Below are positions 9,947 to 26,708 of a stretch of 32,000 nucleotides of DNA, piece after piece; position 1 is the stretch's first letter, and every line of letters starts with the position of its first letter. This DNA comes from Paramicrosporidium saccamoebae KSL3 (taxonomy: Eukaryota; Fungi; Cryptomycota). The DNA lies in NCBI GenBank assembly GCA_002794465.1, contig MTSL01000213.1, positions 139,787 through 171,786 on the forward strand, in the 5' to 3' direction. A model generated the notes under the pieces. That model saw only the letters and a program-made list of their open reading frames with translations, was not told where the DNA came from and made no database searches. The translations under genes were made by a program, and so were the position numbers.

Positions 9947-10400
9947 ATGATTGGACTGCGGAGATGGACGAGACTGGCACCTGACTCGATGCTACGAGAG
10001 GTGCGCATTCTGCCCGTCGGAATATCCCCGACCACTGAGCACTATATCGCGTCCCATCGTGTATGTCGTCCATATCCCTAATAACGGATTGCAGGTGCAG
10101 AAATATGCCGAGCTGGTTCGTGGCCATTACATTTTCCACCACACCTTCTGGTCTCGGAATAATGTGCGATTCTCCCAGGCCCAGCAGAGCTTTGAAGACT
10201 TGAATCCCCAGGGAGACTGGGCAGACTTTTATCGGGAGTACATGCTGAAACATCGGGATGAATTTGCAGCATATCATCGGGAATCTTGGAGAAGGGCATT
10301 CAAGATGCTGTTTGAGGAATATCGCTTCAATTTCCACCAACTGGGCATATATCTGCGTCAGCTATCATTACCCATCCGACGTCTAGTGAGTAATCATTAA
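9947..10400 (+). CDS. COA8: COA8/APOPT1-like (DUF2315) mitochondrial protein, 1 intron (10061-10094)
   Basis: Spliced APDSMLREVRIL...SPTTE...HHTFWSRNNVRF...WADFYREYM..HR.....YHRESWRRAF resembles COA8 PPD..SNLRP...FW..QN..F...MA.FYK.FL...YN..WY.RNF. Confidence 0.65.
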
Positions 10401-10508
10401 ATCTCTGTATAAAGAGCTGGTACTGATCAATAGGAGTGACTAGTCCATCGTAGTACAGTGAGTAGTGAGTGATCAGTGGTGCGAGTGACCAATGCACAAG
10501 TGATTAAC

Positions 10509-10612
10509 AATGTGGGTGACTAGTACTTTGGGTTCTAAAAAATGTGGGTGACTAGTACTTTGGGTTCTTAACAATGCGGGTGGCTAGTACTTTGGGTTCT
10601 TAATAATGCGGG
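10509..10612. repeat. 32-bp minisatellite x3 plus partial copy
   Basis: AATGTGGGTGACTAGTACTTTGGGTTCT-AAAA/TAAC/TAAT; units start at 10509, 10541, 10573. Confidence 0.9.
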
Positions 10613-10781
10613 CGAATATTGGCCATCAGTTTGGGTGACTAGCTGTCCCTCAGTATACATTGTTCGATAACTAATCGTGTTTGTAACGGTCCATCAGGCA
10701 TCACAATTAATTGTCTCGCTCAACACGCCATCCAATCACACCACTTACCCTAAATTTGCGCGGGCCGGGGGCCGAACCCTA

Positions 10782-12077
10782 ATGGCCGTCACAACACGTA
10801 GTCGTACCCGTCGTGTCTCCTCTCCTCGCCGTGGAGTGTTCCCGTCTAATAGTGATACATTGAAATCGCGTCGTTCTGTGTCTCCTTCACGCCGGGATGT
10901 CTCTCCCCACCGGAATTTTTCACCTAACCGAAAGGCCTCTCCACACCGGAATGTCTCTCCTCGTCGGAGTGTTTCTCCCCACCAAAAGGTCTCTCCTAGT
11001 CGACATGTCTCTCTTAGTCGAAATGTTACCTCTCGTCGTGGCAAGGCCTCTACTAACCGCCGTAGCTCTCCCGTGTCTACTGCGCCTTTAACTTCTACTC
11101 CCCCAAGTAGCCTTCCATTTGGAGCCTGGCTGGGTCGATTGGTGGGTCGTGGTGATTCAGTCAAGCCCCACTCATCAAAAACTCCAGAGAGACGAGTAGA
11201 ATTTAGATCGTCGGATGATGACTTGGAAGTCTCTAGTACCTCTGAGGAAGCATTGTTCTCCGATTCCAGTGAGGAGAGCGAGTCTGAGACAACTTTACGA
11301 TCCGCCTCAAAGTCAACTTCTACCCGATCCGCCTCAAAGCACAACGCCCCGAAATCCGGCTCTTATGGCAGCAGTCCCCAAAAGAAACAAACAAAGTCGG
11401 GGGCTGCACGTCGTCCCCGCGGTATCAAGGAATGTGACCGTAAGATGTTACATAAAATGATCAGCAAAGACGATGATCCCGCGATCATTATCAATGCCGC
11501 CAACTATCGTCCCACGAAGCGTCGTCCCCGTCTGCCATGGACTCCCTCCGAGGTCATGTTCCTCCGGATGGGCGTGGAGCGCTTCGGGATGGCCTGGGCC
11601 GATATCCTCAAATGCAATGAGTACAAGTTCCATCCTCATCGGGTGCAAATCGATCTAAAGGACAAGTGGCGCAATCTGACCAATTATCGTCCCTATGGGT
11701 CTCATGGGAAGCGGACCTTTGTGCTGCTTGATGCGGATCACAACACCATAGTCCGTCCCGACACTCTGAAGCCGTATCGCTTCAATAACCGTTGGCCACG
11801 CGATGCTGCCCTAAAGGCCGCATCCAAAACTGAATTCTATGACGTCGGCCGCACACATACGACAATCCGCGTTCGTGAGATTCTTCCCGATGAAAATGCA
11901 TCGTCTGTCCTTGTGCATGTCTACGAGGGCACCCGAAAACGGTGCACTGCCCCGCCCCACCTCAATGAGCTTCGCATCCGCCAAGTTTGGCAAAGCGATG
12001 TGCGCAAAACCCACGAAGAACGGCACGTCAGCAAGGCAGACTTGGTACAAATTGAGCAAGATGCTTGTCGTCTCTGA
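10782..12077 (+). CDS. Telobox-type Myb/SANT protein with N-terminal SPxR repeats and C-terminal MC1-like domain
   Basis: PWTPSEVMFLRMGVERFGMAWADIL...HRVQIDLKDKWRNL is a TRF-type telobox Myb (11535-11678). The C-terminal 100 aa match remembered MC1 motifs. First ATG of the ORF is at 10782. Confidence 0.8.
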   Translation: MAVTTRSRTRRVSSPRRGVFPSNSDTLKSRRSVSPSRRDVSPHRNFSPNRKASPHRNVSPRRSVSPHQKVSPSRHVSLSRNVTSRRGKASTNRRSSPVSTAPLTSTPPSSLPFGAWLGRLVGRGDSVKPHSSKTPERRVEFRSSDDDLEVSSTSEEALFSDSSEESESETTLRSASKSTSTRSASKHNAPKSGSYGSSPQKKQTKSGAARRPRGIKECDRKMLHKMISKDDDPAIIINAANYRPTKRRPRLPWTPSEVMFLRMGVERFGMAWADILKCNEYKFHPHRVQIDLKDKWRNLTNYRPYGSHGKRTFVLLDADHNTIVRPDTLKPYRFNNRWPRDAALKAASKTEFYDVGRTHTTIRVREILPDENASSVLVHVYEGTRKRCTAPPHLNELRIRQVWQSDVRKTHEERHVSKADLVQIEQDACRL

Positions 12078-12343
12078 TATGTGCCCAAGCATTGAGTTTG
12101 TACGATAATGACCAAGGAGCCTATGAGATTTGTGAGGGCCGTGCTTGTAATAAATGCTGAGAAGTCTGTGCTTTGATAACTAACCGAGGAGTAGTAGTAG
12201 TGGCTTTTTATACTCATGGGATTTGTGATCCATGACATATACTCACACACAATAGATCCGTTCCCTCCATCCTCACTGCACAATAGACTTTGTGTTTATG
12301 GTAACAGGTTTCAAGGATAAATAAAGTTCATTTACATGTCGTC

Positions 12344-14430
12344 TTAGGAAGTGGGCGTGCGTCTTTTGCGAGCATGGTCTGGTAGACGGGTGAATGATTT
12401 GGTTCGGCGTTGATCAATTCCATCGGCATTGGTCGGGGTGCTCCGATTACCCACATTGCTCAGACTCCTCACAGACAACACTGGGGACAAATGTCTTCTA
12501 ATGTCCACAGTGGGGTCAAGCATAATGTCGGCGTCACTATCGTTAAAGTGCTCCTCGATGGCTTCCTTGGTGCCATTCGTAGGATCCACCCTAGAGAGCT
12601 CCAGCAGACGATCACGGATTGTTAGTAAAATCTCATCAAGAGTTAATTCTGCCTGCAGATGACTTCGGATCATGGAAATGCCTACTGGTTATAGCAACTA
12701 TGCAATGTACTTGGCCAGGTAGCCTTCTCGCCTCGATGAACAGACTCGAGGATGGCATCCAGAGGACGGTCCACAAACATGTGGAGAATATCTCCCCATG
12801 CCAGGTTGGGGATAATAGTAATGTCGCCATAGTATTTTTGACTCAGAACGCTCTTTAACATTTGACAGGCACGGGGCATTATCCCCAGCCCCGATATTTG
12901 ATCCAGACGATACTTTAGCTCAGAGCGGATCAGATACATAACCTTGTGATTAAAGGAACGAAAGGTCGTGTCCCTGACTGCATGTTTCACAAAGGGATAG
13001 ATATGAGGATTAACTTGACTCACAATAAAGTGGTTCACATTGAACAGCTCAGCCAGGCGGTTCATTGGCAGATCATTCTCCACCGACCCATCACACCAAA
13101 GATCACCCGTGACATTCCACGGAACAATGTCGCCACGTCGGTTTTTTGCCAACAGCGGTGCAGACTCATACAGGGCTGGCACTGCACACGATGCCACCAC
13201 TGCACTCCAGACGAGCACATCAGGTGAGGTGATATAGTTCAACAGTCGAGGCATATCGTACATTGAGGTGGAGCTGACTGCGATATTCAGTACACGATTG
13301 GTCTTTTGATATGCTTCCAGGAATGTAATATCTCCTATGGTCTGGCGAAGGCTCTTCTTCAAGACTTTGCCATCAAATATGACCCCATGGCTGACTAGAC
13401 GAGCAATTTTTTTGCTCCATGGATAGACCCAGGATCCTCGCTGCTCCTCAGGCACAGCCTCCTCTAGCAAATGAGTATTAATGCCTTCCATTTTCATCAG
13501 ACGGGGAAACTCTTCATCAGTATGACAACAGGCAATTGCAGCCATAATCGAGCCAGAAGAGGCCCCCGCAATAATCCTCGGAAGAAGCCCATTCTCAAAC
13601 AGCGCCTTGAGCACTCCAATATGATAGACACCCAAGGAGGCGCCACCAGAGAGCAGCAACGCCGTGTTTCCCAGTGAGTGTCGCAGATCTTTGAAAAAGT
13701 CCATCTGGGCTTTCAACTCGACAGGATTGGTTACCGCAGTAATTCGACTGGCAAGAATGTTTAGGAGGTTCACTACCTCGACATTAAAGTCTTCAATCAA
13801 ATGCTTCGTCCCAATGTTGCAGTGCTGAAAGTTTTTTGCACCATCAATCCCGCCGAAATTTCTTATCAAACCTACATATGTAAGGCGGTATACACAATGG
13901 CACTGGTCCGGAGAAGAAAAGAAATGGCAGCAGCATCTCCCATTTCATGGGCACTCTCGAGCTGTTGTAACCGCGCCTGAACTAGTTCATAGTCGTAATC
14001 CCCAGATCTTGGATCCCTCTTCCACTCATTCTTTCCTACAACATCAGACCATTCAGTCTCTAGAGTGCCTCCCAAACGGTCCAGCTCTGAGGCTGCCGCT
14101 GCCCATTCGTCATAGTCATTTGCCTGCTCCAGCCGTGCCCTCCATACGCGTCTCTCCTGAATCGGGGTGATAACCCCATTATAGGCCACCTGAAACATTA
14201 GGATAAGGTTAGAGCCAAACCTTCACCCAGAAACTGGCAACTTCCCAACAAACGCTACCCACGCCACCCACGAGTGACAGCATCACGCCAAAGAAGGAGT
14301 GAAGCACTACCGTTTCCACTATCATTACTGAGGGGAGGAGGATGGGTACGTTGGTGGATGCGGCCGGTGACTCCGAGGGGAGCGCGTCGTCGTCTTTCAC
14401 CATTCTGCATGAACCGAAGGGGCCAATCAT
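12344..14430 (-). CDS. Patatin-family triacylglycerol lipase (Tgl3/4/5, SDP1-like), 5 exons inferred; start 14430 or 14403
   Basis: YDEWAAAASELD, DYDYELV, LLRTS-LIRN, GTKHLIEDF, LGNTALLLSGGASLG, GASSGS (GxSxG), WCDGSVENDLP, HFIVSQVNPH, YYGDITIIP, GEKATWP. Confidence 0.92.
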
Positions 14431-14539
14431 TGCAATTTCTTTGCTCCACGCACGAAAGCACAAAAATAGCAACACGATTCCTTTAGAACAATGTTTTATT
14501 AATGCAATTGATGTTGGCCGATAGAATCAAGTGTCCAAG

Positions 14540-15628
14540 CTATGGTACCAAGACATCCATACGGGAGTCTTCGTGATTCAATACTGCAAAACGACTCTCG
14601 TTAATGCGACGTTGCTCTTTGATAAACCCATTCATGGAATTACGGATCCGATCAATGTCACCAAAGTCTTCAATTTTATGGGTTCGCAAGTACTCCTGGA
14701 GCAAGAAATCAAGCAATTCACTTGGCGCACCAACCACGATGGAGGCAAGGAGACGGTTTAGATAGATTGTGGGATGGGTAAGACCGATGCAGCGAGCAAG
14801 GAAGCGAGGAATATTACCATAACCTGGAGGTAAAAGGACGGAAAATATTGAGCTCTCGAGAGTCTTTCGGACCTGCCACGGGGAGTTGATAATAGTCTCA
14901 TCTGCAAGCATGGATTCCAGGGCAGGATCTAATTTGACGTTATATTGGGCTACCAGGGAAATCAAAGTTGTCTTGATAATCTCATCTTCCTTGCCTGAAA
15001 CATATTCGTTCCACGAGGAGAGCTCCAGGAGCAGCAGGTGATTCTTGACAATATCTTGACAAAACCTTGAAGGCAGAGCCCCATCTCCTTGCAGCGCCAC
15101 TAAATCCACTAGCTTATTGGCTGCTTTTTGAAGCGTCTCTGTAGGAATCAAATTCTTGCCCAGCGAAGATTTTAGTGACATTGTCTCAAACTTTCCGACG
15201 CTGCTACATTTCCCCATAGCCTGTCCCAGGGCGTTAACCAGCGCCTCGCGCCTCAATTTCTCTTCAGAACTCCACACTATCGGCTTAACGTGCGAGTGCG
15301 GACTCTCTTCTTTACGCTTGGTAGAATCTCGGGCGCCGTTGCGAGTGCGCTGCTCAGTAGGGCTGAACTGTGCGCGATTATCATTGCCTAGCTGCCCAGA
15401 CTCCTCTGCGGAGAATGAGCTGTCAATATTGACACTCATTTCGGTCTCATCACGTTCAGAAAATGAGCCTCTAACAGGGAAAGTAGTCAACAAGTCGTCA
15501 AGGCTATCCCCGACCTCTCTAGAATGAGAGCCCATTCGACGGAAGCCTCCGGGCGGCGAGTCAAATAGTCTACCGGATCCGAAAACACTTTTGACACTAA
15601 CCAGAAGACCAAGCACAGCAAGCCTCAT
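14540..15628 (-). CDS. Orphan protein with probable signal peptide (start 15628 or 15643)
   Basis: About 362-aa open frame; N-terminus MRLAVLGLLVSVKSVFG, then a charged low-complexity region and a helical C-terminal half. No family recognised. Confidence 0.7.
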   Translation of the reverse strand: MRLAVLGLLVSVKSVFGSGRLFDSPPGGFRRMGSHSREVGDSLDDLLTTFPVRGSFSERDETEMSVNIDSSFSAEESGQLGNDNRAQFSPTEQRTRNGARDSTKRKEESPHSHVKPIVWSSEEKLRREALVNALGQAMGKCSSVGKFETMSLKSSLGKNLIPTETLQKAANKLVDLVALQGDGALPSRFCQDIVKNHLLLLELSSWNEYVSGKEDEIIKTTLISLVAQYNVKLDPALESMLADETIINSPWQVRKTLESSIFSVLLPPGYGNIPRFLARCIGLTHPTIYLNRLLASIVVGAPSELLDFLLQEYLRTHKIEDFGDIDRIRNSMNGFIKEQRRINESRFAVLNHEDSRMDVLVP

Positions 15629-15926
15629 GAATATCAGCCACATTCTAGGGTTGCCCAAATTAGATCTTATTCGGAATATTAATAATCCTTATCAATTTGA
15701 GATTGATTGGTGAGAGATTTGTCGAGACTGTGAAAGGTCTGATGGAAAGTTGGAGACACGCAATGTGTGGCTTGATCTGGCTATCATTATTTCAGTAAGT
15801 CTATCCACCCATTAGAAATAAAAGCGACCAAGTCGATGGCAATTACCCGGAAAGGACTATAATAACTTTTTCACTACGCGGCCCAACTTGGTGGTAATTC
15901 TAGATTAAGTGACTTGATCGTGATGC

Positions 15927-16126
15927 GACGTAGAAAACTGATTAGCATGGCTTTTGGGAATAGTTCCCTAGTATGGAGAAGGGATAATCAGGACAACCGA
16001 TGAAGGATAATGAGATCTTTACCATTTGGGAGACTATAAACGGGTCGTTGGATTGACTGAATAAGTTCTCTTCTCATCCCTTCTCGTCTAAACTGGGCCG
16101 TGGTATTATCCCCCCACTACGCGACA
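15927..16126 (+). repeat. Copy 2 of the interspersed repeat
   Basis: 31-nt exact match 15998-16028 with 19706-19736; 35 nt with 1 mismatch at 16030-16064 vs 19754-19788; shared 3' end ATCCCC..ACTACGCRACA. Confidence 0.88.
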
Positions 16127-16151
16127 GTGATACTCCCTCCTTCGCATGGCC

Positions 16152-16226
16152 CAAGTCTATAACAACTTTCCACTATGTGGTCCAAGTTTATAATAAATTT
16201 TCCACTACGTGACAAAAGTCTATAAT
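16152..16226. repeat. 31-32 bp degenerate tandem repeat related to the 3' end of the interspersed element
   Basis: CAAGTCTATAACAACTTTCCACTATGTGGTC / CAAGTTTATAATAAATTTTCCACTACGTGACA / AAAGTCTATAATAGC. Confidence 0.7.
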
Positions 16227-16280
16227 AGCTTTGTTACGGCGCGCCAACAGAATGCCCAAGAAAGAGAAAATGCATAAATC

Positions 16281-19200
16281 ATGCCTCCGAGAAGGAGAAC
16301 GAGCAAGTCCATCGATACAGAGTTAGTTATTGCTGAAAGCTTTGCTTCTTTGCAGTTATATCAAGAGCAGGCGAAAAAGCTGGCAAATGTAGATGCTGCC
16401 ATTACAACGGCGCGGGCTGGGCTTGTCTCCAATCCAAAAAAGTGGCTCATTTCCGAACCATCTCTTCTCGATGCAATTGGGTTGCATGCACCAGATGCTT
16501 TACGCGACTGCTTGCTGGAATTTCTTGGCACTATTTCAGAATCGAGAGAGCTAGTCAATGCTACAGTATTGCGACTTGGATTGTTAGGCCCACCAAAGAG
16601 CTTTGACAAGATTCAGCAAGTGCTGTCAGTATCAGATTCAAAGTGGGACATTGTTGAGAATCTTGCTTGTTTGTGTGACTGTACATTGGACCAACATCTT
16701 CGGGATTCTATTGAGATTTGCGAAAAGCTTTGGATTGATCCAGACAGAGCCAGGATATTCAGGTTTCTGGCGAATATCGACATTCCTGACGATCTCTTGG
16801 GGTGTTGGCGCGATAGGGGACTTCAATGTCTTGGAACTGGTCTAGGTGACTTTTATTCAGTCTTTTCATTCCTCATTAAATGCTGTCGATCTACCGAATC
16901 CGCCAAATGTGTATCTTGAGCGGTTCTTGTATTAAAGACTAGGTATTTGAACATTTACAAGTTCACTTAAAGCTGAATCGTTTGGAAGAAAGTGTTTGTC
17001 GCCAAGAGCAGTCAAAACGGGCTCGCACGACTGAAGGATTTCAAAAAATTGCTCTGGACGACTGTTTTAGGTGTCTGATACAAAACAAGTACGCGTTAGA
17101 GGCGTTCCGAAATTGTAAAAGTTTGACTAACCCAGTGTTCTATTTGTTCAACTTGCTTCTTTTCCGAATCTCCTCGGAGGAAAAGCACGTGCTACAGGTC
17201 CTGAAAGACGCTAGTCAAATTGATAACGTCCGGCTTGCTGCTGAATTCCTACTTTCGGAAACGGTGCACAAGGTCGATTTGCCTCTTGTTATGAGGATCG
17301 TCAGATCTTGTGTTCAGCAAGGATCATTAAAGATTGCCAGTCTCTTGATGGTGCAGGGATTCCAATCTGCCAGTCAGTATGATGCCCGCGACCTCATTTC
17401 CGAGCTTGCTGGCTACATTACTGACACTAAGAGCTCCAGTTGGGGATTGGGCCTGCTTGAAGAGATTGCCATGAATTCTTCCGAGCTAATCTATCGTTAT
17501 CAATCAACGCTAAAGATAATCTTTGACCATGTCGATCGCCTTCAAAGTGATCAAATAAGAACCTATTACAGGTGCATGGTCCGACTGGCAGTATATACGC
17601 TAACTCAACATGGCGACGCCTCACCGTGGAACGACTTGCTAATCATATTTCGCAAACAAGTTGGCAGCCTGGATTCAAATATACGACTTTTTGGCGCCCA
17701 AGCTGTCCTTGCAATGTCGGGTGTGCTATTCTGTTCATCACCAGACCTGGCTGAGGAGGCTACGTGTTCACAGGCGCCTCGCCATATTGGAAATCAACGA
17801 TTCTTGGAGACATTCCTTGTCTTATTTGAACTTTCTCTTTCCATGGTCAACTGCGATGCTCCATCAGTCCAAGTGATCTGCACCGAGTTGCCCTCCATCC
17901 TATCGGAAGCAGACCCCATGATCATAGCCAGCCTTGGTCGACGAATATCGAACATTTTCGAATCTGCCTTTATCTTTGAGCTGAAATCTTCTGACAAAAC
18001 TGAGCATAATTTGGATGCTGATGAAGCTTTGATTGGCGTTTCCTTCGGGCACGACTCTCCCCAAGCTGCCTCTAGAGTTATCATGCCATACCTGTTCCAT
18101 CTGCTGCAATGGAGCGAGAAGATGACCCACCATGGCTCGCTCGACAATATCGACGCGCTCCTTGGTTGTCCTGTAAAGACTGACGACTCCGAGTTGCATG
18201 GAATTGTTCTTTCCAATTGGCTACGGGTTCTTGTTAATGCATTTGCGGATCAGGATGACAAGGAGATTCAAAACAAGTGTTTGTCCCGGCTTGCCCTCTT
18301 GGCTCAATCAAAGATGGACATTCCCACTGTGATATCTGGTGGCCGTGCGGAAAATGCAATGGTGCGTGAAGACTTTGACAACGACTTTGTACATACACTT
18401 ACTTCCTGCAAGCATGTCTCCGGACCGCCCACAGCGATCAAGATTTCATCGATCCCGCTGTCGGCTTTGGTATATTGCAAGTATTTTGCAAAATTCGAAG
18501 CGTTCCTCTCCAAAGAATTCTCCAATACCAATCTCTCTTCCTGGTCAATCGAGGATATTGAAAAGGTCATTGAGGCCGTGGTAGGAAGACTAGATGTGCT
18601 GGTAATCCTATGCGGAGAGCTACAGAGACGAAGTTATGTAAATTTACCTGAAGTTTGCGCTAAGATTATCAAAGGTGTTGATCAGTTCGATTCAATAGTT
18701 TCCTTGCTGCAAATTCTAATCATCGGCAAGACCACGTCAGAGGAGATCATTTCGCACGGAACAGAGTTTATATTTTCTTCTGAATGCTCCACTCCTGAAG
18801 CCGTAAGTATATGCGAAAAATTGAGTGTGATCCACACGGATGTTGCTGGCTTTATTGAACACATTCTGGAGCAACTCCCAAACTTGTCAGCGTGGAAAAA
18901 GAAACTAGCATTACACGGAGTACTGTGTAGCTCGCTTTCCAAGACGGCACTGACTGATCCCCCTACGATTGAAAAGGCCACCCGGATATTTGAAAAGTTG
19001 GTTCAAATGAGTAGAGCAGGGATTGACACTGGCTTCTCTGAAGCCATTCTGAAATACGGCAGAATCTTTGTCGAAAGATTTGTCAAAGAGTGTTTGCCGA
19101 TATTACAGCGCTCTTTCATCTCCACACGAACATTGATCCTGGAGACTTTCAAAGTCTTGCAGCTTGCAACTCGTTCCCTGCAGATTATGTGCAACCACTT

Positions 19201-19597
19201 GAAACCTCAACGATTGCCAAAATACCGCAACTTGCTACCGCCGATGCGCCGGGTGCTCGAGTCTTTGCTCTATGGGGTGAAACAGCTATTACAGGCCAAC
19301 AATTGTCTCTCGGCCTTTTGGATTGGAAATCTAAAGCATCGGACCATTGATGGAGCCGAGGCGAATTCGCAAGTACCTCTCGACGTTGACTCGGACGAGA
19401 TGAGTTCACAAGAGTCTCTTGATTCGGGCGAGATGAATTCACAAGAATCTCTCGATTCAGGCGAGACGAATCCACGACGGGCTGTTGATCCAAATGAAAC
19501 GAATTTGTCAGCATCCCTCAATGCCAATCCAGACAGAGGCCCTCCCCGTGTCCCCAACAGTAGAATATTATCAAAAGAGCTGATATCGGAAGACTAG
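16281..19597 (+). CDS. FANCD2: Fanconi anemia group D2 protein homolog, at least 1 intron (16911-16942)
   Basis: DLLIIFRKQVGS (monoubiquitinated Lys context), HGSLDNIDALLGCP, NWLRVLVNAF, ILKYGRIFVERFVKECLP, LQIMCNHLK, ANNCLSAFWIGNLKHRTIDG all match FANCD2 blocks. The 32-nt GT-AG intron joins the two ORFs in frame. Confidence 0.9.
19388..19504 (+). repeat. 33-bp coding repeat in the FANCD2 tail
   Basis: DSDEMSSQESL / DSGEMNSQESL / DSGETNPRRAV / DPNETN. Confidence 0.8.
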
Positions 19598-19627
19598 CGG
19601 TATGATCCTACTATATAATCTCATATA

Positions 19628-19897
19628 ATATTGTGACGTAGAAGTCTGATTAGTTGGGTATTTGAAGATAGTTCCTTAGTTTGGAGAAGAGGTAATCGGA
19701 ACAATCGATGAAGGATAATGAGATCTTTACCATTTGATGATTATGTTATTTGTGAGACTATAAATGGGTCGTTGGATTGACTGAATAAATTCTCGTCTCG
19801 TCTCGTCTCATCTCATCTCATCTCTTCTCTTCTCGTCTCTTCTCGTCTCTTCCCGCCTGACAAAGTCCGTGGTACTATCCCCACTACGCAACAATAT
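19628..19897 (+). mobile_element. Copy 3 (most complete) of the interspersed repeat; putative non-autonomous DNA element with imperfect terminal inverted repeats and internal (TCTCN)n microsatellite
   Basis: Homologous to 1-160, 15927-16126 and 24566-24718. Ends ATATTGTGACGTAG (19628-19641) and CTACGCAACAATAT (19884-19897) are inverted at 12/14. Pentamer array at 19791-19851. Repeat status is certain; mobility is inferred. Confidence 0.5.
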
Positions 19898-20135
19898 AAT
19901 ATCCGCCCGTGATGGGTATTAGAGGAATAATGGGTTAAATATTGTGAGGGCTAAGTAGGGAACATTTATTAGATTCCTTGGCCAGAATAAAAAGTGTCTG
20001 TTTACATGTCCTTTTGCACACTGTTTGGCAACACCTTTTTATATGATAAGATGGGCCGCAATAGATTACACCACCTCTCTTGAACCCCTGAGATGTGAAT
20101 ATACCGTCTCACAAATATAAATAAAATAATCTTTA

Positions 20136-20796
20136 ATGAGGATTACATCCGAGTTGATTGAAAAATCAGCGTCGTTTATAAATGCTGTCAAAGACCGAGA
20201 ACTTGACCTACGAGGCAACTGAAATACTTTTTGCTAATGTTTTAGGTAACAAGATACCAGCGATAGAAAACTTGGCCATAACGAGGGACCAATATGACAC
20301 TCTTGATTTGACAGATAATGATATTCCACGACTGGAAAACTTTCCCACACTGCGCCGGCTACGTACGCTGCTCGTCTCTAACAACAAAATTACAAGACTT
20401 GATCTGGAGATGATGCAAAAGCTACCCGCATTAGAGATGCTGGTCCTTAACAATAACCCACTGGGCACAGTGGAGGCGTTGAGGGTGCTTCAGGGTGGAA
20501 AGCTGCGGTATCTCAGTCTGATTGACTGTCCCGTGACGAGGACGCCTCATTATCGACTGAATGTGATTGCCATGTTGCCACAACTCAAAGCATTGGACTT
20601 TTGTAAGATTACCGCAGCAGAACGACAGGCCGCGGCCGACCTTACCACAGACACTGCCGTGGTAGAGGAACGACCCAGCAAAGTGAGCAAGGTGGATAGA
20701 GAGAAGATTAAGGAGCGACTGAGGAATGCCAAGAGTCTAGACGAGATTAAGCAGCTGGAACGCATCTTGGATACTGGCCATGTTCCAGATATTTAG
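20136..20796 (+). CDS. SNRPA1: U2 snRNP protein A' (Lea1), 1 GC-AG intron (20215-20245)
   Basis: Spliced MRITSELIEKSASFINAVKDRELDLRG-NKIPAIENLAITRDQYDTLDLTDNDI..LENFPTLRRLRTLLVSNNKI...HYRLNVIAMLPQLKALDF. Confidence 0.93.
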
Positions 20797-20820
20797 AGAA
20801 TAAACTCTTATATTGAGTTT

Positions 20821-21513
20821 ATGAGGTATTTGGATGGCAGGACAGCGCAGGAAATTGACCAAGAGCTTTTAAATGTGCACCAATTCTCCATTGACCAGCT
20901 GATGGAGCTGGCGGGTCTGTCAGTTGCCTGTGCAATCCACGCCGAATATGCAGCGGAACAAAGTTGTCTGGTGGTCTGCGGTCCGGGCAATAATGGGGGC
21001 GATGGACTGGTGGCTGCCCGTCATTTGGCGCACTTTGGATATCGTGTCACTGTAGTGTATCCGCGTGTCGGAAAACTGGACATTTTTCCCGTACCGTCGA
21101 ATCCAATATTCATGCTGTAGCGATTAATGGCCCAATGTGTAGACATGGGGATTGATGTTTGTCAAGATTGGCCCATACGGAAGTCTTATGACATTGTAGT
21201 GGATGCCATATTTGGGTTTAGCTTCCACGGGCCTGTCCGTGAACCATATGCCAGTCTTGTTCAGCAACTGCAATCCCACCACCGTGTCGTCTCTGTTGAT
21301 GTGCCGTCGGGATGGGAGGCGGACGCTCCGCCTACAAATCCAGTATGGATGCCCGCTATGCTAGTCAGTCTCACTGCTCCTAAGCAGTGTTGCATATACT
21401 ACAAAGGCATCCATTACCTGGGTGGACGCTTTATCCCACCCAGTCTTGCTGCAAAGTACAAGTTGCAATCCAGCTATGCTGGGTCCTCCCAAATCCAGCG
21501 ACTTGAGCAATAA
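20821..21513 (+). CDS. NAXE: NAD(P)H-hydrate epimerase (YjeF_N), 1 intron (21091-21120)
   Basis: AQEIDQELL...FSIDQLMELAGLSVA, CGPGNNGGDGLVAARHL, IVVDAIFGFSF, VSVDVPSGW, LVSLTAPK, HYLGGRFIP. Confidence 0.95.
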
Positions 21514-21539
21514 AATTAACATTTTGCATAACCAAACCA

Positions 21540-22331
21540 ATGGGTGCAAAGGGATGGTTCCGACGGAGTTTGGTGTTTGACGCACCACATGCCAAATGGT
21601 ACTTTATCATCTCTGCCTCCTTCTACCTGTTCTGCGCCTATCTGATGGTATGTCAACACAGTCATTTGGGATTGTAGACCGTCTTTTCCAATGTTGCATC
21701 ATACCTCAGCCCTTCCAACGTCCACTTTCCAATCCTCCCTGACCTTGGCCTGGCCATCATGCCCCACATTAAGATGATTTGGCTGACAGATTTGGTTGTG
21801 CAGACGCCCGTCCTTTACACATTTGTCTACATTTTCATCGCCGACCCGCAGCCCGTGCTCTCCATCTGTCGCATTGGAAATACCCTTTCTATTGCCTATC
21901 TTTTGCGCTGTGTTTCAATGGTGGTGACCAGTCTGCCCGATCCGCGTCCAGGCTGCGTCCGCATTACCTCCAAAGTATTCACCACATTTACTTTGCACCG
22001 TTGTGGCGGTAAGAGCCAAGGCGTGATGGTTAGCTGTGTAGATTGCCTGTTCTCGGGACACATGATCATGCTAACTATCATTGGACTATATTGGCTCTCC
22101 CACCAGCCCTCGTTCTACCACCAAATAGCCGCCATCCTCAAGAAATGCACTCTACTGCTATTCTTTGCGGGAATCTGGGCCATCCTGGCAAACCGCACGC
22201 ACTACACTATTGACATTCTCGTGGCAATCTATACAGGCGCGGGCATCTGGTGGTCCTTTGCCTATTTCTGGCAAAACCACCTGGCTAAAAGGCTAGTTAA
22301 TGTTGATAGATTTTATGATAAAGCCTTTTAG
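21540..22331 (+). CDS. Sphingomyelin-synthase / IPC-synthase (PAP2_C) family phosphotransferase, 2 introns (21648-21677, 22009-22041)
   Basis: After splicing: LPDLG (D1), SLPDP (D2), CGDCLFSGH (D3) and HYTIDILVA (D4) motifs with multiple TM helices. Confidence 0.85.
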
Positions 22332-22568: not shown

Positions 22569-24329
22569 TTAAAAATCCATCATGCTCATAGCCAATGCCA
22601 TCGCGAGATCGTCATCAACAGCAGGCTGGAGATCAGGTCTAACAACCTCATTCGATATTTGCTCATTACTTCTAGTGGACTCTCTTGGCATTCTTGGTGC
22701 TTGACTACCAAGTTCAGGCCAACTGCGCTCATTACGACTGGTAGTCACTCTTGGTATTATTGGTGCTTGATCGCCAAGTTCAGGCCAACTGTGCCCGTTA
22801 AGTCTATTAGACGCACCCATTCCCCGAGTTGCGGTAGTAGTGGTAGTGGTGGTAGCCCTCGTAGTTCTCGCCGACGGAATATTATTTCCTGTAGTCCTGG
22901 GGTTCGATCTGGAAGCAGAGAGAGTACTACTAGCAGGCGTTTGCAATGCTCTGGGGTTCGGTCTGGCAACAGGAGTGCTGTTAGTGGGCCTTTGCAGTGT
23001 GCTGGGGCTCGGCCTGGCAGTGGGGGGACTATTAGTAGGTGTTTGCAGTGTTCTGGGGTCTGATCTGGCAGCAGAGGGGATATTGTTAGTGGGCGTTTGC
23101 AGTGTTCTGAGGCTCGGTCTGGCAACAGGAGTACTGTTAGTAGACGCCTGCGACGCTCTGGGGTTTGGAAGCTCTCTACGAGCTCGATCAGAGGAGCCAC
23201 TTACTCCCACAGGGATATTCTCATCAGTTCTCCGTGGTCGTAGGAGCGGTTCTTCTCGCCGAGGAGTGCCCTCAGAAAGAGTTCGATTTGCCGTTACGAT
23301 ATGACTTGGAACAGCCGCTTTGAAATCGGCAGCATGGTTATTCCACTGTACGATTTCAGATTCCTTTACGTAAAACAACAGCGCAACCTCTTTGTTGTAG
23401 GACAAGTGCTCCTCATCTTTCAGGCGCCTGGCTGTGCTATCGTTAAAAATATGCCAGTCATTATAGAGAATGTTGGTACGGACCACAGCCTGAAAATGTC
23501 CCGGTCGGCCAATTACCAATCCATTCAGGTGATAGAGCTCGCCATTGACAATGAGGATATTTTCGTACTGTAATTTAGCATTGGAGTTGGTAAATGAGAT
23601 ATTACCGCGCTTCACGAGGATGGGCAGGACGGGCCCGGTAGATTTAATGGTGTACTTTTCTTGCACAGTATTCAGACCGTCGAACTTTGCTCCAAAACCC
23701 GACAAACACTCATCAATGTAATCAGTGCCAGTTGGGCTTATTAGAACGTCATTAATCGTGGTGTTCGGATTGTCCAAAAGATCTTGGAGACTTTGTCCAT
23801 CCAAAGTGCCAGGAACTACGCTGATCTGCACACTCGACGCATCTTCATCTTCTATGAAATACGTAATGCCCTCAAAGGACAAGGTTTTTTCGAGTTTTGT
23901 TTGCATAAGTCCCTTCATAAATGGCAAAACATTTGTGAGCCACATTAAAAAAATGTCTGGATCACCTTCCTGACGAGGCATCAATCCTAGTCCTTTCTGC
24001 TCTCCCAGGATGCTCGCCTTGTACTCTTTTTCAAAATCGGGCACAATGGTAATCGCATCAGTGTTTGTAGATCGATAATCATTTCTTCCATATTGGGATT
24101 TTGGGGTCGTCTGCAGTCTAGCGAACACACCAGCGAGGGCCAAGTGAATCTTGCTGCCGGCCTCATTAACGTTGAGGACAGCCTCGCGAACGCTATGGAT
24201 GGCAAAGAGATTTTGGAGGACAGAAGACATGTAACAGAAATTCATTTGTCTATTTTGTATGCCCACAGGAACGGTATTCTGTGCGCACCAAACAGCGGTA
24301 CAGGACAGGAGGAAGAGAAACAGTTTCAT
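22569..24329 (-). CDS. Signal-peptide-bearing USP (peptidase C19)-type deubiquitinase with C-terminal UIM, paralog 1
   Basis: MKLFLFLLSCTAVWCA leader; Cys box GIQNRQMNFCYMSSVLQNL; QEGDPDIFL; His/Asp box GRPGHFQAVVRT...WHIFNDS; terminal DDDLAMALAMSMMDF. Confidence 0.82.
   Translation of the reverse strand: MKLFLFLLSCTAVWCAQNTVPVGIQNRQMNFCYMSSVLQNLFAIHSVREAVLNVNEAGSKIHLALAGVFARLQTTPKSQYGRNDYRSTNTDAITIVPDFEKEYKASILGEQKGLGLMPRQEGDPDIFLMWLTNVLPFMKGLMQTKLEKTLSFEGITYFIEDEDASSVQISVVPGTLDGQSLQDLLDNPNTTINDVLISPTGTDYIDECLSGFGAKFDGLNTVQEKYTIKSTGPVLPILVKRGNISFTNSNAKLQYENILIVNGELYHLNGLVIGRPGHFQAVVRTNILYNDWHIFNDSTARRLKDEEHLSYNKEVALLFYVKESEIVQWNNHAADFKAAVPSHIVTANRTLSEGTPRREEPLLRPRRTDENIPVGVSGSSDRARRELPNPRASQASTNSTPVARPSLRTLQTPTNNIPSAARSDPRTLQTPTNSPPTARPSPSTLQRPTNSTPVARPNPRALQTPASSTLSASRSNPRTTGNNIPSARTTRATTTTTTTATRGMGASNRLNGHSWPELGDQAPIIPRVTTSRNERSWPELGSQAPRMPRESTRSNEQISNEVVRPDLQPAVDDDLAMALAMSMMDF
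22660..23150 (-). repeat. Coding tandem repeats in the USP paralog 1 linker (17/18-aa units; 22-aa SWPELG unit x2)
   Basis: STPVARPSLRTLQTPTN / NIPSAARSDPRTLQTPTN / SPPTARPSPSTLQRPTN / STPVARPNPRALQTPAS; SWPELGDQAPIIPRVTTSRNER / SWPELGSQAPRMPRESTRSNEQ. Confidence 0.88.
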
Positions 24330-24565
24330 TTTGCAAAAACCCAGGGTAAAGCAAGCAAGGGCTCATGTTAAATAATTAGCTGGGTATTGGTTGTTTATAT
24401 GTGGGCAAATGCGGCAAGAAGGGGAGGGTTGATACTTCAATGTACTTTTTATAATCTTCCTCACTATGGGACACGGTCTTTTCCCGAATCTTTCTGATTA
24501 CCGGAATGAAGTAAATATGGTTTAGGAGGTGGGCCTGAACAATTTCCAATATCCGAAATTCATGT

Positions 24566-24718
24566 TGTCGCGTAGTGGGGATAAATAGTATGGATACACA
24601 TCTCACTGTCCTCAAATACCCAGCAAAGCGATCCACTCTAGCACACAAATACCCGGCAAAGCGATCCACTCTAGCACACAAATACCCAACTAATCAATCC
24701 TCTGCGCCTCTACGTCAC
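24566..24718 (-). repeat. Copy 4 (internally deleted) of the interspersed repeat with an internal 33-bp tandem duplication
   Basis: Retains the 5' end (CAAATACCCAACTAATCA and TCTACGTCAC at 24679-24718) and 3' end (TGTCGCGTAGTGGGGAT at 24566-24582). 33-bp units start at 24613 and 24646. Confidence 0.7.
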
Positions 24719-24785
24719 TGTTATCATAAACACGAAATTTTAACAAAGTATACTTTGAATATGTCGTTGCTATTATTTTCTATCC

Positions 24786-26366
24786 TTAAAACTGCGCAAG
24801 ACTCAAGGCAATCGCAGCCCGAATATCTTCATCGTCACTTCCATAGAGTCCATCTTGCCAATTTTCCACAGAGGACTGATTAGGCTTACTTGGATCACAG
24901 GAATCACCCTGACCAGCTACCTTGGTGGAAGAGTCCAGTGTCTTCTTATCATGATCAAGAAGATCGTCCAAATTCTCATCGCATTCATCAAATTGCCAGT
25001 CTTTCTTCCTGTTGCGTCTAGGAAGCACATTACCCTTAAACTCATTGGATTTGGCTGGGCGGTTAATTTCATGATTAGTACTAACTGGAAATTCATCGAA
25101 AAAGTTCCATGTCACATCTCTCTCCTCCTCATTCGGCAGATTAGAATTGTTCACACAGAGAAAAGTTTGAGTTTGTGATGAACATGTAGCCAAAGTCGAG
25201 AGCTCTACAGTTGCCGTCCATTTAGGTATGGTGCTCTCGTCGAACTGTTCGCCGAGTCTGTCCTGCTCATCCTTTGGGAGGTCCTCTGTTATGGGTTGAT
25301 CTCTTGGAGCAACTCTCTTGAAGCGGCCAAGGTTTGCCAGAATAATCTCGGGAATTTCTGCCTTGTACTCACCATGCCAATTTATGGCTTCAGATTCCTT
25401 TACATAGAATAAAAGCGCAACTTTGTCTTGGTATGAGAGCTCTGCATTCTTCTTCAGACGAGTGGCCGAGCTATCGTTGAAGCAATACCAGTCGTCGTCA
25501 GAAGTGTTGGTACGTACAACGGCTTTGAAATGCCCTGGCCTGCCGATTACCATTCCATTCAAGTGGTAAGTCTCGCCCCCAATGTCAAGAGTCTTGGTAT
25601 AGTGCAGTTTGGCCTTGGAGTTGGTAAAGTGGATATTATCACGCTTCACTAGGACGGGCAGGATGGGGCCCGTAGATACGATGGTGTATTTTTCTTGGAT
25701 ATTGTACTGTTGACCAAATACCACTTTAGCATCAGTCAAAAGCTGATCGATAGTCTGATCACCAGTCTTGGTAATATTGACTCCCTCAATGGAAGAGCCA
25801 ATATTGTCCAAAAGATATTGAAGATCTTGCTCCTTCGAGTCATCACTCAGTACTGAAACCTGTACGCTTGAAACGACGTCGGTTATTTGTCTGGAATACG
25901 TAACGTCACCATAGGTCAAAGTTCTTTCGAGTTTTGCGTACACAAGATCATTTACCAGCGGCAGGACATTTGCAAGCCACATTAAAAAAATGTCTGGATC
26001 ACCTAGTTGGTAAGGCTTCAGCTCTAGTCCTTTTTGTTCTCCAGTGATGCTCGCCGAGTAGGCTTGATAAAAGCCAGGATCGATACTGACTGCATTGGCA
26101 CTTGAAGAGGGATACTCATCTCGTTTGTATTGGTCTTTTGGAGCCATCTGCAGTTTAGCAAACACATCAGCGAGGGCCAGGTGGATCTCGCTGCCTGCTT
26201 CCCCAACGTTGAAGACAGCCGCGCGAAAGTTGTTGAGAGCAAAAAGATTCTGTAGGACTGAGGCGAGATAGCACAAATTTCTCCCCTCATTTATGATACC
26301 CACAGGGACAGTATTCTGTGCGCACCAAACAGTGGTACAAGACAAGAGGATGAGAAGCAGCTTCAT
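24786..26366 (-). CDS. Signal-peptide-bearing USP-type deubiquitinase with C-terminal UIM, paralog 2
   Basis: MKLLLILLSCTTVWCA leader, homologous to the start of paralog 1; GIINEGRNLCYLASVLQNL; GRPGHFKAVVRT...WYCFNDS; terminal DDEDIRAAIALSLAQF. Confidence 0.82.
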   Translation of the reverse strand: MKLLLILLSCTTVWCAQNTVPVGIINEGRNLCYLASVLQNLFALNNFRAAVFNVGEAGSEIHLALADVFAKLQMAPKDQYKRDEYPSSSANAVSIDPGFYQAYSASITGEQKGLELKPYQLGDPDIFLMWLANVLPLVNDLVYAKLERTLTYGDVTYSRQITDVVSSVQVSVLSDDSKEQDLQYLLDNIGSSIEGVNITKTGDQTIDQLLTDAKVVFGQQYNIQEKYTIVSTGPILPVLVKRDNIHFTNSKAKLHYTKTLDIGGETYHLNGMVIGRPGHFKAVVRTNTSDDDWYCFNDSSATRLKKNAELSYQDKVALLFYVKESEAINWHGEYKAEIPEIILANLGRFKRVAPRDQPITEDLPKDEQDRLGEQFDESTIPKWTATVELSTLATCSSQTQTFLCVNNSNLPNEEERDVTWNFFDEFPVSTNHEINRPAKSNEFKGNVLPRRNRKKDWQFDECDENLDDLLDHDKKTLDSSTKVAGQGDSCDPSKPNQSSVENWQDGLYGSDDEDIRAAIALSLAQF

Positions 26367-26708
26367 TTTGCCAAAGTCCGGGGGTAGTGATTCCATCCGA
26401 GACAGGGTTTTGTATATCACATGACCATTACCGATCGACCCTTTGTCAATTAAAAGCACGGATATTAAAAGCATGAACAATAAAGAAACACGGATGGACA
26501 GTCAAAGCGTGTTCGCAGCAGAAAAAGCACGCCGCGGCCGATAATGCGTACATGGCCACAAAAAGTCATCAGCACGAGTGTGGCTTGTCTTGAGTAGAGT
26601 GATTCCATCTTCAATGCTTGGCACCGTTTAATTTACCTCTTTTGATATTTGAAGGGTTCGAGGCGCCAGTTGTGTTTATGGAAAGTGTTCATGGCCAGGG
26701 TCCTCTCA

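Follow-up and report, generated by a model that had tools for sequence, protein, structure and literature searches.

Two adjacent single-exon genes of Paramicrosporidium saccamoebae, an obligate intranuclear parasite of the amoeba Saccamoeba, encode proteins in which a divergent yet complete USP domain, with Cys32, His and Asp intact in both, is preceded by a hydrophobic leader and followed by a linker and a UIM-like helix at the C terminus. The explanation that we favour, and hold as a whole with moderate confidence, is that these genes (g1 and g2) are tandem paralogs, that they fall in a separate clade of cysteine deubiquitinases of the USP type, and that their products are secreted and act on host-side ubiquitin.

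Gene models and N-terminal leaders

Both genes lie on the minus strand of contig MTSL01000213.1 (assembly GCA_002794465.1), where the initial annotation of the 32,000-nucleotide stretch analysed here (the window) had placed them (Table 1). The encoded proteins align over their first ~377 amino acids, with 54% identity, and are not alignable beyond that. The shared MKL start that had been annotated is backed by paralog similarity at the DNA level, which begins just ~20 nt before this ATG, and by coding constraint on the leader, but is not the start of either deposited model. The deposited g2 model begins at an in-frame ATG 10 codons upstream (26394–26396; MESLPPDFGK-MKL...), and that of g1 (P0002) at the internal Met28, so that the leader and half of the Cys box are lost. 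Upstream of the g1 ATG, a stop codon occurs after 14 codons, with no in-frame ATG in between. Across codons 1–27, g1 and g2 differ by seven synonymous and five non-synonymous codon differences (dN/dS 0.20); the coding sequence of the leader is subject to purifying selection.

Table 1 Features of the g1–g2 locus (positions in the window)
Feature	Positions	Strand	Description
g1	22569..24329	-	Complete single-exon CDS, 586 aa + stop; Pfam UCH; AF2 model m7dab5e9ad660
g1 leader, aa 1-16	24282..24329	-	MKLFLFLLSCTAVWCA; n-region MK, 14-residue apolar h/c-region, small residues C15/A16 before Q17
g1 USP domain, aa 17-345	23295..24281	-	Cys32 at 24234-24236, His278 at 23496-23498, Asp297 at 23439-23441
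g1 linker, aa 346-569	22623..23294	-	Predicted disordered, basic (pI 11.9), 41% S+T+P
g1 UIM-like helix, aa 570-586	22572..22622	-	Core DDDLAMALAMS; Pfam UIM 10.1 bits (below cut-off); AF2 helix 572-585
Spacer, g2 stop to g1 start	24330..24785	.	456 bp; 33-nt tandem repeat x2.3 at 24613-24688
g2	24786..26366	-	Complete single-exon CDS, 526 aa + stop, from start codon common to g1; AF2 model m70040fc40db2
g2 leader, aa 1-16	26319..26366	-	MKLLLILLSCTTVWCA; hydrophobic; sequence features, AF2 model and family comparison
g2 USP domain, aa 17-341	25344..26318	-	Cys32 at 26271-26273, His279 at 25530-25532, Asp298 at 25473-25475
g2 linker, aa 342-508	24843..25343	-	Predicted disordered, acidic (pI 4.6); one basic cluster RRNRKK at aa 450-455
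g2 UIM-like helix, aa 509-526	24789..24842	-	Core DDEDIRAAIALS; Pfam UIM 17.0 bits, E 0.005 (below cut-off); AF2 helix 512-525

The annotated 16-residue leader is present in both proteins: K2 is followed by 14 uncharged, mostly hydrophobic residues and then by polar QN. In the AF2 model of g1, residues 2–16 form a low-confidence helix outside the folded domain, and the g2 leader likewise lies outside it. Heuristics and comparison with relatives suggest that the leader is a cleavable signal peptide, predicting entry into the secretory pathway. Neither protein has an ER-retention or GPI-type C terminus (g1 ends in ...MMDF and g2 in ...LAQF).

Catalytic domain, linkers and terminal helix

In both proteins, the Cys box (PVGI.N....C32Y..S.LQNLF) begins five residues past the leader, and the His/Asp box reads GHF(Q/K)AVVRTN....DW..FNDS. 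Pfam PF00443 (UCH) matches g1 with 36.2 bits and g2 with 43.5 bits (gathering score, 23.9), the g2 match spanning the full profile (1–254). With the catalytic residues also intact, the architecture that the initial annotation described (leader, USP domain and terminal UIM) is real, although the UIM profile itself scores below its Pfam cut-off of 21 bits in both proteins. A profile search of the PDB gave Ubp6 as the closest sequence match (E 2.5e-7); in its alignments, the Cys and His boxes fall on the corresponding boxes of Ubp6 and USP7, which share the Cys/His/Asp triad with g1 and g2. The AF2 cores reach pLDDT values of up to ~93, and the top Foldseek matches of the g2 model, and its closest solved structures, are USP7 catalytic domains (E 4e-18; TM 0.65–0.70 by target length). 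Neither sequence contains CxxC pairs for the fingers zinc site, which USP7 and USP14 also lack. Identity to USP7 is only 16–19% in the structural alignments, however, and g1 and g2 have no TRAF or UBL domains; USP7 and USP14 are, moreover, cytosolic or nuclear housekeeping enzymes without leaders. Relative to most relatives and to canonical USPs, g1 and g2 carry one inserted residue between the Asn of the oxyanion hole and the catalytic Cys, so catalytic activity stays a prediction. An N-D-S sequon overlaps the catalytic Asp and could be glycosylated in the ER if P. saccamoebae N-glycosylates. Between the paralogs, dN/dS is ~0.3, falling to a minimum of 0.14 over the His/Asp box region (codons 241–341).

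The g1 linker is built of coding tandem repeats (51-nt unit ×4.3 at 22922–23141; 66-nt unit ×2.3 at 22661–22812). Conserved domains joined to unrelated linkers had been taken as the mark of a diversifying effector family. The contrast between domains and linkers holds for the two paralogs, but the g2 linker is partly conserved in the environmental ortholog P0008 (40% identity, 55/138), and the dN/dS of ~0.3, which does not exceed 1, gives no sign of diversifying selection or an arms race.

Despite the unalignable linkers, both proteins end in a strict UIM core (DDDLAMALAMS-MMDF in g1; DDEDIRAAIALS-LAQF in g2). In composition-preserving shuffles, such a core fell within five residues of the C terminus in one (g1) and three (g2) of 200,000 trials, a chance of ~1e-5 per protein. 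The AF2 confidence of these helices is low (pLDDT ~40–60). The P0008 fragment stops at its contig edge in NDEDI, which aligns to DDEDI of g2. By motif, the helices are putative ubiquitin binders. USP25, USP28, USP37 and ataxin-3 likewise join a deubiquitinase core to short UIM helices, which contribute binding of ubiquitin chains. In these intracellular proteins, the UIMs lie at the N terminus or within the domain and usually occur in tandem, whereas g1 and g2 are secretory-type proteins that each end in just one UIM, at the extreme C terminus.

A wider family with leaders

A full HMMER scan recovered ~35 relatives. The P. saccamoebae genome holds at least one further paralog, which lies elsewhere and has no UIM (PSACC_02893), and nearly all other relatives come from metagenome eukaryotes. 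The annotated tandem pair is therefore two adjacent paralogs but not just a pair; by sequence comparison, it belongs to an older, wider, uncharacterised clade. Neither g1 nor g2 proved to be a one-to-one ortholog of any canonical intracellular USP: family matches score 105–220 bits and single-domain canonical USPs at most 45. Pfam UCH is above threshold in 20/20 aligned members, Cys, His and Asp are each at least 90% conserved family-wide, and the motifs flanking the Cys and His boxes persist throughout, as does the conserved Asp of the DD..F motif, although the catalytic Cys is lost in P0027, P0053 and P0060. A neighbour gene of one relative, SPT16, looks fungal, so some environmental members may come from free-living organisms.

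Every relative with a complete N terminus has a hydrophobic leader directly before the Cys box, and an N-terminal hydrophobic segment occurs in 34/34 members examined; none of eight vertebrate USP18-like, USP7-like and yeast-type USPs from the same searches has such a leader. Conserved as a feature and not as a sequence, the leader is, across the sequences compared, a family trait, described here for the first time. The N-terminal flank is more positive than, or as positive as, the C-terminal flank in 29/31 family leaders, predicting translocation of the USP domain. Six relatives (P0005, P0015/P0120, P0025, P0053 and P0069) carry a C-terminal transmembrane segment followed by an RRRR/KRRR-type basic tail, a type I layout that predicts an exoplasmic USP domain, outside the cell. 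The view that USPs never have hydrophobic N termini was too strong, given that fungal Ubp1-like USPs from the same searches (P0121–P0124) have them, often two. Their layout differs from that of g1 and g2, with a ~100-aa spacer before the domain and other flank charges, and they separate from the family in a rough neighbour-joining tree.

Proposed role and alternative explanations

Parasites of this kind probably export or display enzymes of the g1/g2 type, which would remove ubiquitin tags inside the host cell. In the mechanism that we propose, the signal peptide would route the proteins into the parasite secretory pathway and be cleaved near residue 16; the mature protein, a zinc-less USP core like that of USP7 and USP14 (Cys32-His-Asp triad) that a long disordered linker connects to one UIM helix at the C terminus, would be released into the inhabited compartment, the host amoeba nucleus. 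There the UIM would dock on ubiquitin or ubiquitin chains while the core cuts ubiquitin off conjugates, likely targets being ubiquitin deposited on the parasite's surface or ubiquitin-modified proteins of the host nucleus. Ubiquitin-dependent host defence would be blunted, or the host reprogrammed. Relatives with a C-terminal membrane span may play an equivalent role while tethered to the parasite surface.

In microsporidia, the sister lineage of Paramicrosporidium, UCH ranks with the commonest known domains of proteins predicted to be exposed to the host; Paramicrosporidium itself was outside the species set (Reinke et al. 2017, PMC5423893). The list includes KCZ80175.1 of A. algerae (TM i12-30o282-304i) and EJW03922.1 of E. 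aedis (i12-31o) (PMC5423893); like g1 and g2, these proteins pair a USP/UCH domain with a targeting signal at the N terminus, and the listed topology of KCZ80175.1 (N-terminal hydrophobic segment, outside, C-terminal transmembrane segment) matches the layout of the type I relatives. Unlike g1 and g2, they are entries of a computational list only, without a reported UIM (PMC5423893). The P. saccamoebae genome paper makes no mention of secretion or ubiquitin. Export of a normally cytosolic enzyme by an ER signal peptide is an established strategy of microsporidia, whose hexokinases reach the host–parasite interface, host cytoplasm or nucleus; there, too, start codons were mis-annotated, which hid the signal peptides. 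Hexokinases are, however, another enzyme of another pathway, with secretion shown by yeast secretion trap and immuno-EM, whereas export of g1 and g2 is a sequence-based prediction. Microsporidian cells are targeted by host ubiquitin, a response that the parasite seems to suppress or evade. Deubiquitinase effectors of bacteria and viruses (CE-clan, OTU and others) take off host ubiquitin and evade defences that depend on it (PMC7971504, PMC7396840, PMC10643670). These are likewise pathogen enzymes delivered to host cytoplasm or organelles, but mostly have CE or OTU folds, not USP, and use bacterial secretion systems instead of a eukaryotic ER signal peptide.

Export would be moot if the leader were an annotation artefact, with real starts downstream yielding ordinary cytosolic USPs, as the Met28 start of P0002 might suggest. 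That start would delete the PVGI.N half of the Cys box, present in all relatives, and the purifying selection on codons 1–27, the onset of paralog similarity right before the MKL ATG and the independent leader-bearing starts of orthologs and paralogs in other assemblies make this highly improbable. Alternatively, the leader could be an uncleaved anchor that keeps the USP domain at the cytosolic surface of the parasite ER or another organelle, where it would act on the parasite's own ubiquitin conjugates. Yeast Ubp1 and human USP30 and USP19 carry a hydrophobic terminal segment and keep their USP domain cytosolic, bona fide intracellular USPs such as the fungal Ubp1-like sequences have hydrophobic N termini, and USP and UIM modules usually act in the cytosol or nucleus. 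Nevertheless, an apolar span of only 14 residues, from K2 to Q17, is short for a stable anchor; the Cys box follows 5–16 residues after the leader without the spacer of the Ubp1-like proteins, which stand apart in the tree; and both the flank charges and the relatives with a C-terminal span and basic tail, compatible only with an exoplasmic domain, point to translocation. We consider such an anchor quite unlikely.

The proteins might instead be exoplasmic proteases with parasite substrates, for instance in the processing of wall, surface or polar-filament components or of a ubiquitin-like tag, and not act on host ubiquitin conjugates. The divergence of the family, the Cys-loop insertion and the S/T/P-rich, repeat-built g1 linker, which resembles O-glycosylated wall proteins, fit this idea, but g1 and g2 both keep the C-terminal UIM, a module that we know solely as a ubiquitin binder, and have no ER-retention or GPI signal; moreover, the USP motifs are retained across the family, and to our knowledge the USP fold has no non-ubiquitin/UBL substrate. 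We regard this reading as unlikely. It is very unlikely that the proteins are secreted ubiquitin binders of little or no catalytic activity, which as decoys or scaffolds would mask or sequester ubiquitin chains of the host: members without the catalytic Cys do exist and the insertion in g1 and g2 might impair catalysis, yet in these two proteins the Cys, His, Asp and flanking motifs are intact, and the dN/dS minimum is as expected for a constrained active site. If secretion of deubiquitinases acting on host-side ubiquitin, the explanation preferred here, is true, a family from a parasite of the amoeba nucleus would export or display deubiquitinases against host ubiquitin tagging.

Start codons and selection in the tandem pair

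The adjacent genes g1 and g2 appear to encode USP deubiquitinases that have been recast as secretory or surface proteins of the microsporidian lineage, each with a terminal UIM. The g1 start lies 456 bp beyond the g2 stop, and the genes around the pair are unremarkable for a eukaryote (TCTP, an HP1-like protein with chromo and chromo-shadow domains, DBR1 and genes for PAP2_C and YjeF_N proteins). [quoted passage not shown] The two proteins are 54% identical across the first ~377 residues, and the remainder is unalignable. In the spacer between the genes, a 33-nt unit is repeated in tandem (2.3 copies at 95% matches); it may have a promoter or regulatory role for g1 or be left over from the duplication.

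Features discussed in the text, with positions in the window
Feature	Position	Strand	Description
ORF	14540..15658	-	372 aa
Deposited merged product	~16980..22330	+	1628 aa; positions 14066-20116 of the fetched locus L001
LRR ORF	20182..20796		Separate ORF
YjeF_N ORF	20821..21513		In two pieces
PAP2_C ORF	21759..22331		Separate ORF
g1	22569..24329	-	Uninterrupted ORF, 586 aa
g1 linker repeats	22661..22812 and 22922..23164	-	In-frame tandem repeats
g1 segment missing from the deposited protein	24246..24329	-	Leader and half of the Cys box
Spacer repeat	24613..24688		Between g2 and g1
g2	24786..26366	-	Uninterrupted ORF, 526 aa
Codons added in the deposited g2 protein	26367..26396	-	Upstream of the shared start

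A practical point is that the deposited gene models conceal the g1 leader: the deposited g1 protein (P0002) begins at an internal methionine, Met28, and the deposited g2 protein (P0001) begins 10 codons upstream of the start codon that the paralogs have in common. Four results favour this common MKL start over the deposited ones. In g1, a stop codon lies 14 codons upstream of the MKL ATG, with no in-frame ATG in between; DNA similarity between the genes starts only ~20 nt before the MKL ATG, upstream of which it does not exceed background; codons 1–27 differ by seven synonymous and five non-synonymous codon changes (dN/dS 0.20), which indicates that the leader codons are translated and constrained; and a Met28 start would delete one half of the Cys box, PVGI.N, that is present in every relative. 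If the upstream ATG of g2 were used, the hydrophobic core would remain at the N-terminus, behind an n-region of 12 residues.

The likeness of the two leaders might instead stem from gene conversion at the 5′ end, but third-position identity there (0.71) falls within the range of the other windows (0.38–0.80) and thus gives no special signal of conversion. The initial annotation had proposed a diversifying effector family, for which we found no support: Nei–Gojobori (NG86) dN/dS between g1 and g2 is 0.29 overall (dS ~1), ranging from 0.14 at the His/Asp box region to a maximum of 0.50 at the fingers region, well below 1 throughout, and the g2 linker is partly kept in a metagenomic ortholog (P0008). 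The pair is under purifying selection, somewhat relaxed.

Two further gene models in the window deserve comment. A 372-aa ORF begins with another signal-peptide-like leader (MGNPRMWLIFMRLAVLGLLVSVKSVFG), has no Pfam match at E ≤ 0.01 and may be another secreted protein. The deposited 1628-aa product merges FancD2, LRR, YjeF_N and PAP2_C domains; given the separate ORFs found there, this model is probably a fusion of several genes.

Catalytic domain, linkers and C-terminal UIM

Both proteins match the Pfam UCH family (PF00443; MEROPS C19) above the gathering cut-off of 23.9 bits (g1, 36.2 bits; g2, 43.5 bits), as do all 20 aligned relatives. The USP Cys box and intact His/Asp box described in the initial annotation were confirmed, with the catalytic residues present in g1 (Cys32, His278 and Asp297) and g2 (Cys32, His279 and Asp298), at positions that are at least 90% conserved among the family. 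A PDB profile search aligned the Cys and His boxes with those of Ubp6 and USP7. The domains have some particularities: one residue is inserted between the oxyanion Asn and the catalytic Cys, in the loop before the Cys; an N-D-S sequon overlaps the catalytic Asp; and, because CxxC pairs are absent from the mature domains, the fingers zinc site is missing. USP7 and USP14 are likewise not known to have a fingers zinc site.

AlphaFold2 models of both proteins comprise a low-confidence helix at residues 2–16 that lies outside the domain, a USP core to approximately residue 345 (pLDDT mostly 66–93), a disordered linker of about 160–220 residues (pLDDT ~30) and a terminal helix. With the g2 model as a Foldseek query, the top 50 matches were all USP7 catalytic domains (best E value, 4e-18), with TM scores by target length of 0.61–0.70, apart from 0.36 for one multidomain entry; the best of them reached 0.65–0.70 at 16–19% identity. 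We therefore have moderate confidence that g1 and g2 adopt the USP fold (thumb, palm and fingers), as each model is based on a shallow alignment of seven sequences.

The terminal UIM of the initial annotation stands as a motif, whereas its profile scores fall short. A consensus core is found at both C-termini (DDDLAMALAMS in g1, DDEDIRAAIALS in g2), composed of an acidic run, a hydrophobic residue and x-x-Ala-x-x-x-Ser, followed by four residues ending in Phe; against the Pfam UIM profile (PF02809), g2 scores 17.0 bits (E = 0.005) and g1 10.1 bits (E = 0.79), both below the cut-off of 21. A chance match can be discarded on the basis of shuffling: in 200,000 permutations, the core came to lie five or fewer residues from the C-terminus just 1 and 3 times. 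The cores coincide with the modelled terminal helices (residues 572–585 in g1 and 512–525 in g2; pLDDT ~40–60). The strict core was found neither in the rest of g1 and g2 nor in any other protein fetched, and the motif was not seen in any relative beyond the group of g1, g2 and P0008. The two copies share ancestry and are hence not independent of each other, but their retention while the intervening ~170–220 residues diverged beyond alignment argues for selection on the UIM.

The linkers differ in character. That of g1 is strongly basic (pI 11.9) and that of g2 acidic (pI 4.6), and one may speculate that these opposite charges direct the two proteins to different host partners. The g1 linker is built of in-frame tandem repeats of a 17-aa unit (R.LQTPTNS-type; 51 nt, 4.3 copies) and a 22-aa unit (SWPELG.QAP-type; 66 nt, 2.3 copies) and also holds a run of seven Thr, whereas the g2 linker has neither repeats nor a Thr run. 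The g2 ortholog P0008, a JGI metagenome fragment of 242 aa, has a linker that aligns to that of g2 (55 of 138 residues identical) and not to that of g1; its last residues before the contig cut, NDEDI, pair with DDEDI at the start of the g2 UIM. This pattern suggests that the linkers are not free of constraint and that the g1/g2 duplication is probably older than the split from the organism that carries P0008.

N-terminal leaders across the family

The 16-aa hydrophobic leaders quoted in the initial annotation are present at both ORF starts. Each consists of M-K, then LFLFLLSCTAVW (g1) or LLLILLSCTTVW (g2), then C-A|Q-N, so that Lys2 is followed by 14 uncharged, mostly hydrophobic residues ending in Cys-Ala, and these by Gln-Asn. 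The leader is the top 9- and 13-residue hydropathy window in both proteins and the top 19-residue window in g1 only. By heuristic standards, the leaders show the tripartite design of signal peptides (a positive n-region, an h-region of 7–15 residues and a polar c-region in which small residues precede the cleavage site), and a span of 14 residues is typical of signal peptides that are cleaved, whereas membrane anchors are usually longer.

The comparison across the family is a stronger argument for a signal peptide than these features. A hydrophobic leader was found in all 34 family members with scored N-termini, mostly 11–30 residues ahead of the catalytic Cys (one subgroup has a spacer of ~100 residues after the leader), and the leaders are dissimilar in sequence, as expected for signal peptides. 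Such an N-terminal segment was absent from the eight vertebrate USP18-like, USP7-like and yeast-type USPs recovered in the same searches. In 29 of 31 leaders, g1 and g2 included, the C-terminal flank is no more positively charged than the N-terminal one (C minus N difference of 0 or below); this predicts that the USP domain is translocated. Six relatives (P0005, P0015, P0120, P0025, P0053 and P0069) carry a C-terminal hydrophobic span of ~19 residues followed by an RRRR/KRRR-type tail, a layout consistent with type I membrane proteins whose USP domain would face outside. The architecture and secretory character ascribed to g1 and g2 hold up well, and the leader is a trait of the family.

One alternative is a cytosolic membrane anchor of the Ubp1/USP30 type. 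Four fungal Ubp1-like USPs from the same searches (P0121–P0124) also have hydrophobic N-termini, as g1 and g2 do; in these proteins, however, the hydrophobic segment lies ~100 residues from the Cys box, often there are two segments, the flank charges differ, and all four fall outside the family in a rough neighbour-joining (NJ) tree. A span of 14 residues, a Cys box that starts five residues later, the flank charges and the tree position speak against such an anchor for g1 and g2, from which the Ubp1-like proteins differ in span, spacer and charges alike, and a signal peptide is the reading that we retain.

Relatives were sought with HMMER in an exhaustive search of 1.84 billion representative proteins, which gave 99 hits. 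A word-indexed search returned only the window's own two proteins with g2 as the query and four proteins with the 20-sequence family alignment, a result that, given the HMMER hits, reflects a limit of sensitivity and not absence. For metagenome locus scans, the 20-sequence alignment offered no sufficiently conserved stretch, and a 5-sequence alignment matched 119 patterns, of which none was confirmed. Three high-scoring hits (P0007, P0018 and P0021) were rejected as vertebrate USP18-like arrays, the repeated domains of which inflate their scores. Also among the hits is P0022, a bacterial-looking protein of 1199 aa that combines three USP-like domains with Ig-like repeats behind a signal peptide and may be a secreted multi-USP protein of a prokaryote.

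In the NJ tree, g1 and g2 are sisters and the family protein P0003 is the next branch. A third paralog of P. saccamoebae (PJF17274.1/PSACC_02893; P0031; 413 aa), encoded on another contig, carries a leader and scores 69 bits against UCH, has no UIM and is placed in another subclade, one characterized by a conserved C-terminal ...LGQ...L... helix. Among the 30 clusters looked up, P. saccamoebae was the sole named organism with family members; the other family members came from JGI, ENA or Logan metagenome assemblies, and most relatives are known only from unannotated sequence. The three environmental flanking regions fetched (L002–L004) are compact eukaryotic loci, and the SPT16 that adjoins one relative (P0004) scores higher against fungal FACT (783 bits) than against the human counterpart (672 bits). 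One of these loci (L004; Logan SRR21707646_12191) carries family genes from different subclades in tandem (10001-11338 and 11485-12843): one encodes P0015, with a C-terminal TM and an RRRR tail, and the other a soluble, P0006-like protein whose true start is likely an internal Met ahead of the leader.

Other members vary in layout and catalytic residues. Five proteins from ENA, JGI and Logan assemblies (P0029, P0045, P0046, P0048 and P0057) form a subclade with a leader, a spacer of ~40–160 residues, the catalytic Cys at positions 59–173 and acidic C-termini; the tail of P0029 (DESWFLVDSD) resembles an Atg8-interacting (LIR) motif, and proteins of the P0048 cluster are found on near-identical ~105-kb contigs that recur across several ENA assemblies. 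The catalytic Cys is replaced by Pro in P0027 and by Ser in P0053, and no Cys box is detectable in P0060. All three retain the leader, P0053 also its C-terminal TM, and they are probably pseudo-enzymes inside the clade.

Possible export and ubiquitin evasion

On the leader evidence, g1 and g2 would enter the parasite ER and lose the leader; as neither a retention signal nor a GPI signal was found in either protein, they would then be released. For an intranuclear parasite, the outside would be the host nucleus. An export signal in front of two ubiquitin-directed modules makes sense only if they reach a compartment that contains ubiquitin, which points to the host: the UIM would dock with low affinity on ubiquitin or ubiquitin chains, cleavage would follow by the USP core, and TM-bearing relatives would catalyse the same reaction fixed to the parasite surface. 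Both export to the host and enzymatic activity are steps that we infer.

Similar proteins have been predicted before. In the host-exposed proteins predicted from 23 microsporidian genomes, the ubiquitin carboxyl-terminal hydrolase domain ranks with the commonest known domains, and the table includes UCH proteins that are hydrophobic at the N-terminus, one of which has a further TM at its C-terminus (Reinke et al. 2017, PMC5423893); these were predictions. The g1/g2 family has the same layout, compared by topology strings only (KCZ80175.1 and EJW03922.1), and g1 and g2 likewise combine a UCH domain with a predicted signal peptide and appear lineage-restricted among the 30 clusters looked up. 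Our literature search found no characterized secreted USP of a eukaryotic parasite, only this list, and neither secretion, signal peptides and effectors nor ubiquitin come up in the P. saccamoebae genome paper. Export of normally cytosolic hexokinases through added signal peptides is experimentally supported in Microsporidia. Host ubiquitin is deposited on cells of the microsporidian Nematocida and limits their growth; most microsporidian cells escape this targeting, which increases when the parasite is treated with drugs, and the study's conclusion was that it 'suppresses or evades' ubiquitylation by a mechanism that was not identified (PMC4063957).

These observations can be joined in a reading that we regard, taken as a whole, as possible rather than probable. 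Rozellomycota and Microsporidia may share an ancient clade of exoplasmic USPs, some soluble (with a UIM in Paramicrosporidium) and others held as type I proteins on the naked parasite surface. The clade would erase host ubiquitin marks and so allow escape from ubiquitin- and autophagy-based clearance; in Paramicrosporidium, it would act in the host nucleus, possibly on ubiquitinated chromatin. It would then represent the first USP-class DUB effector family of a eukaryotic pathogen to use the classical secretory pathway.

A clade of USPs that bear signal peptides, some of them anchored so that the catalytic domain faces outward, is a concrete and testable candidate for ubiquitin evasion, and, given that Paramicrosporidium branches beside Microsporidia, such evasion would date far back in the lineage. 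Hexokinase-type export, in which a signal peptide is grafted on a cytosolic enzyme, would then include the ubiquitin system as well, and the DUB effectors of bacteria and viruses would gain a eukaryotic counterpart with the USP fold.
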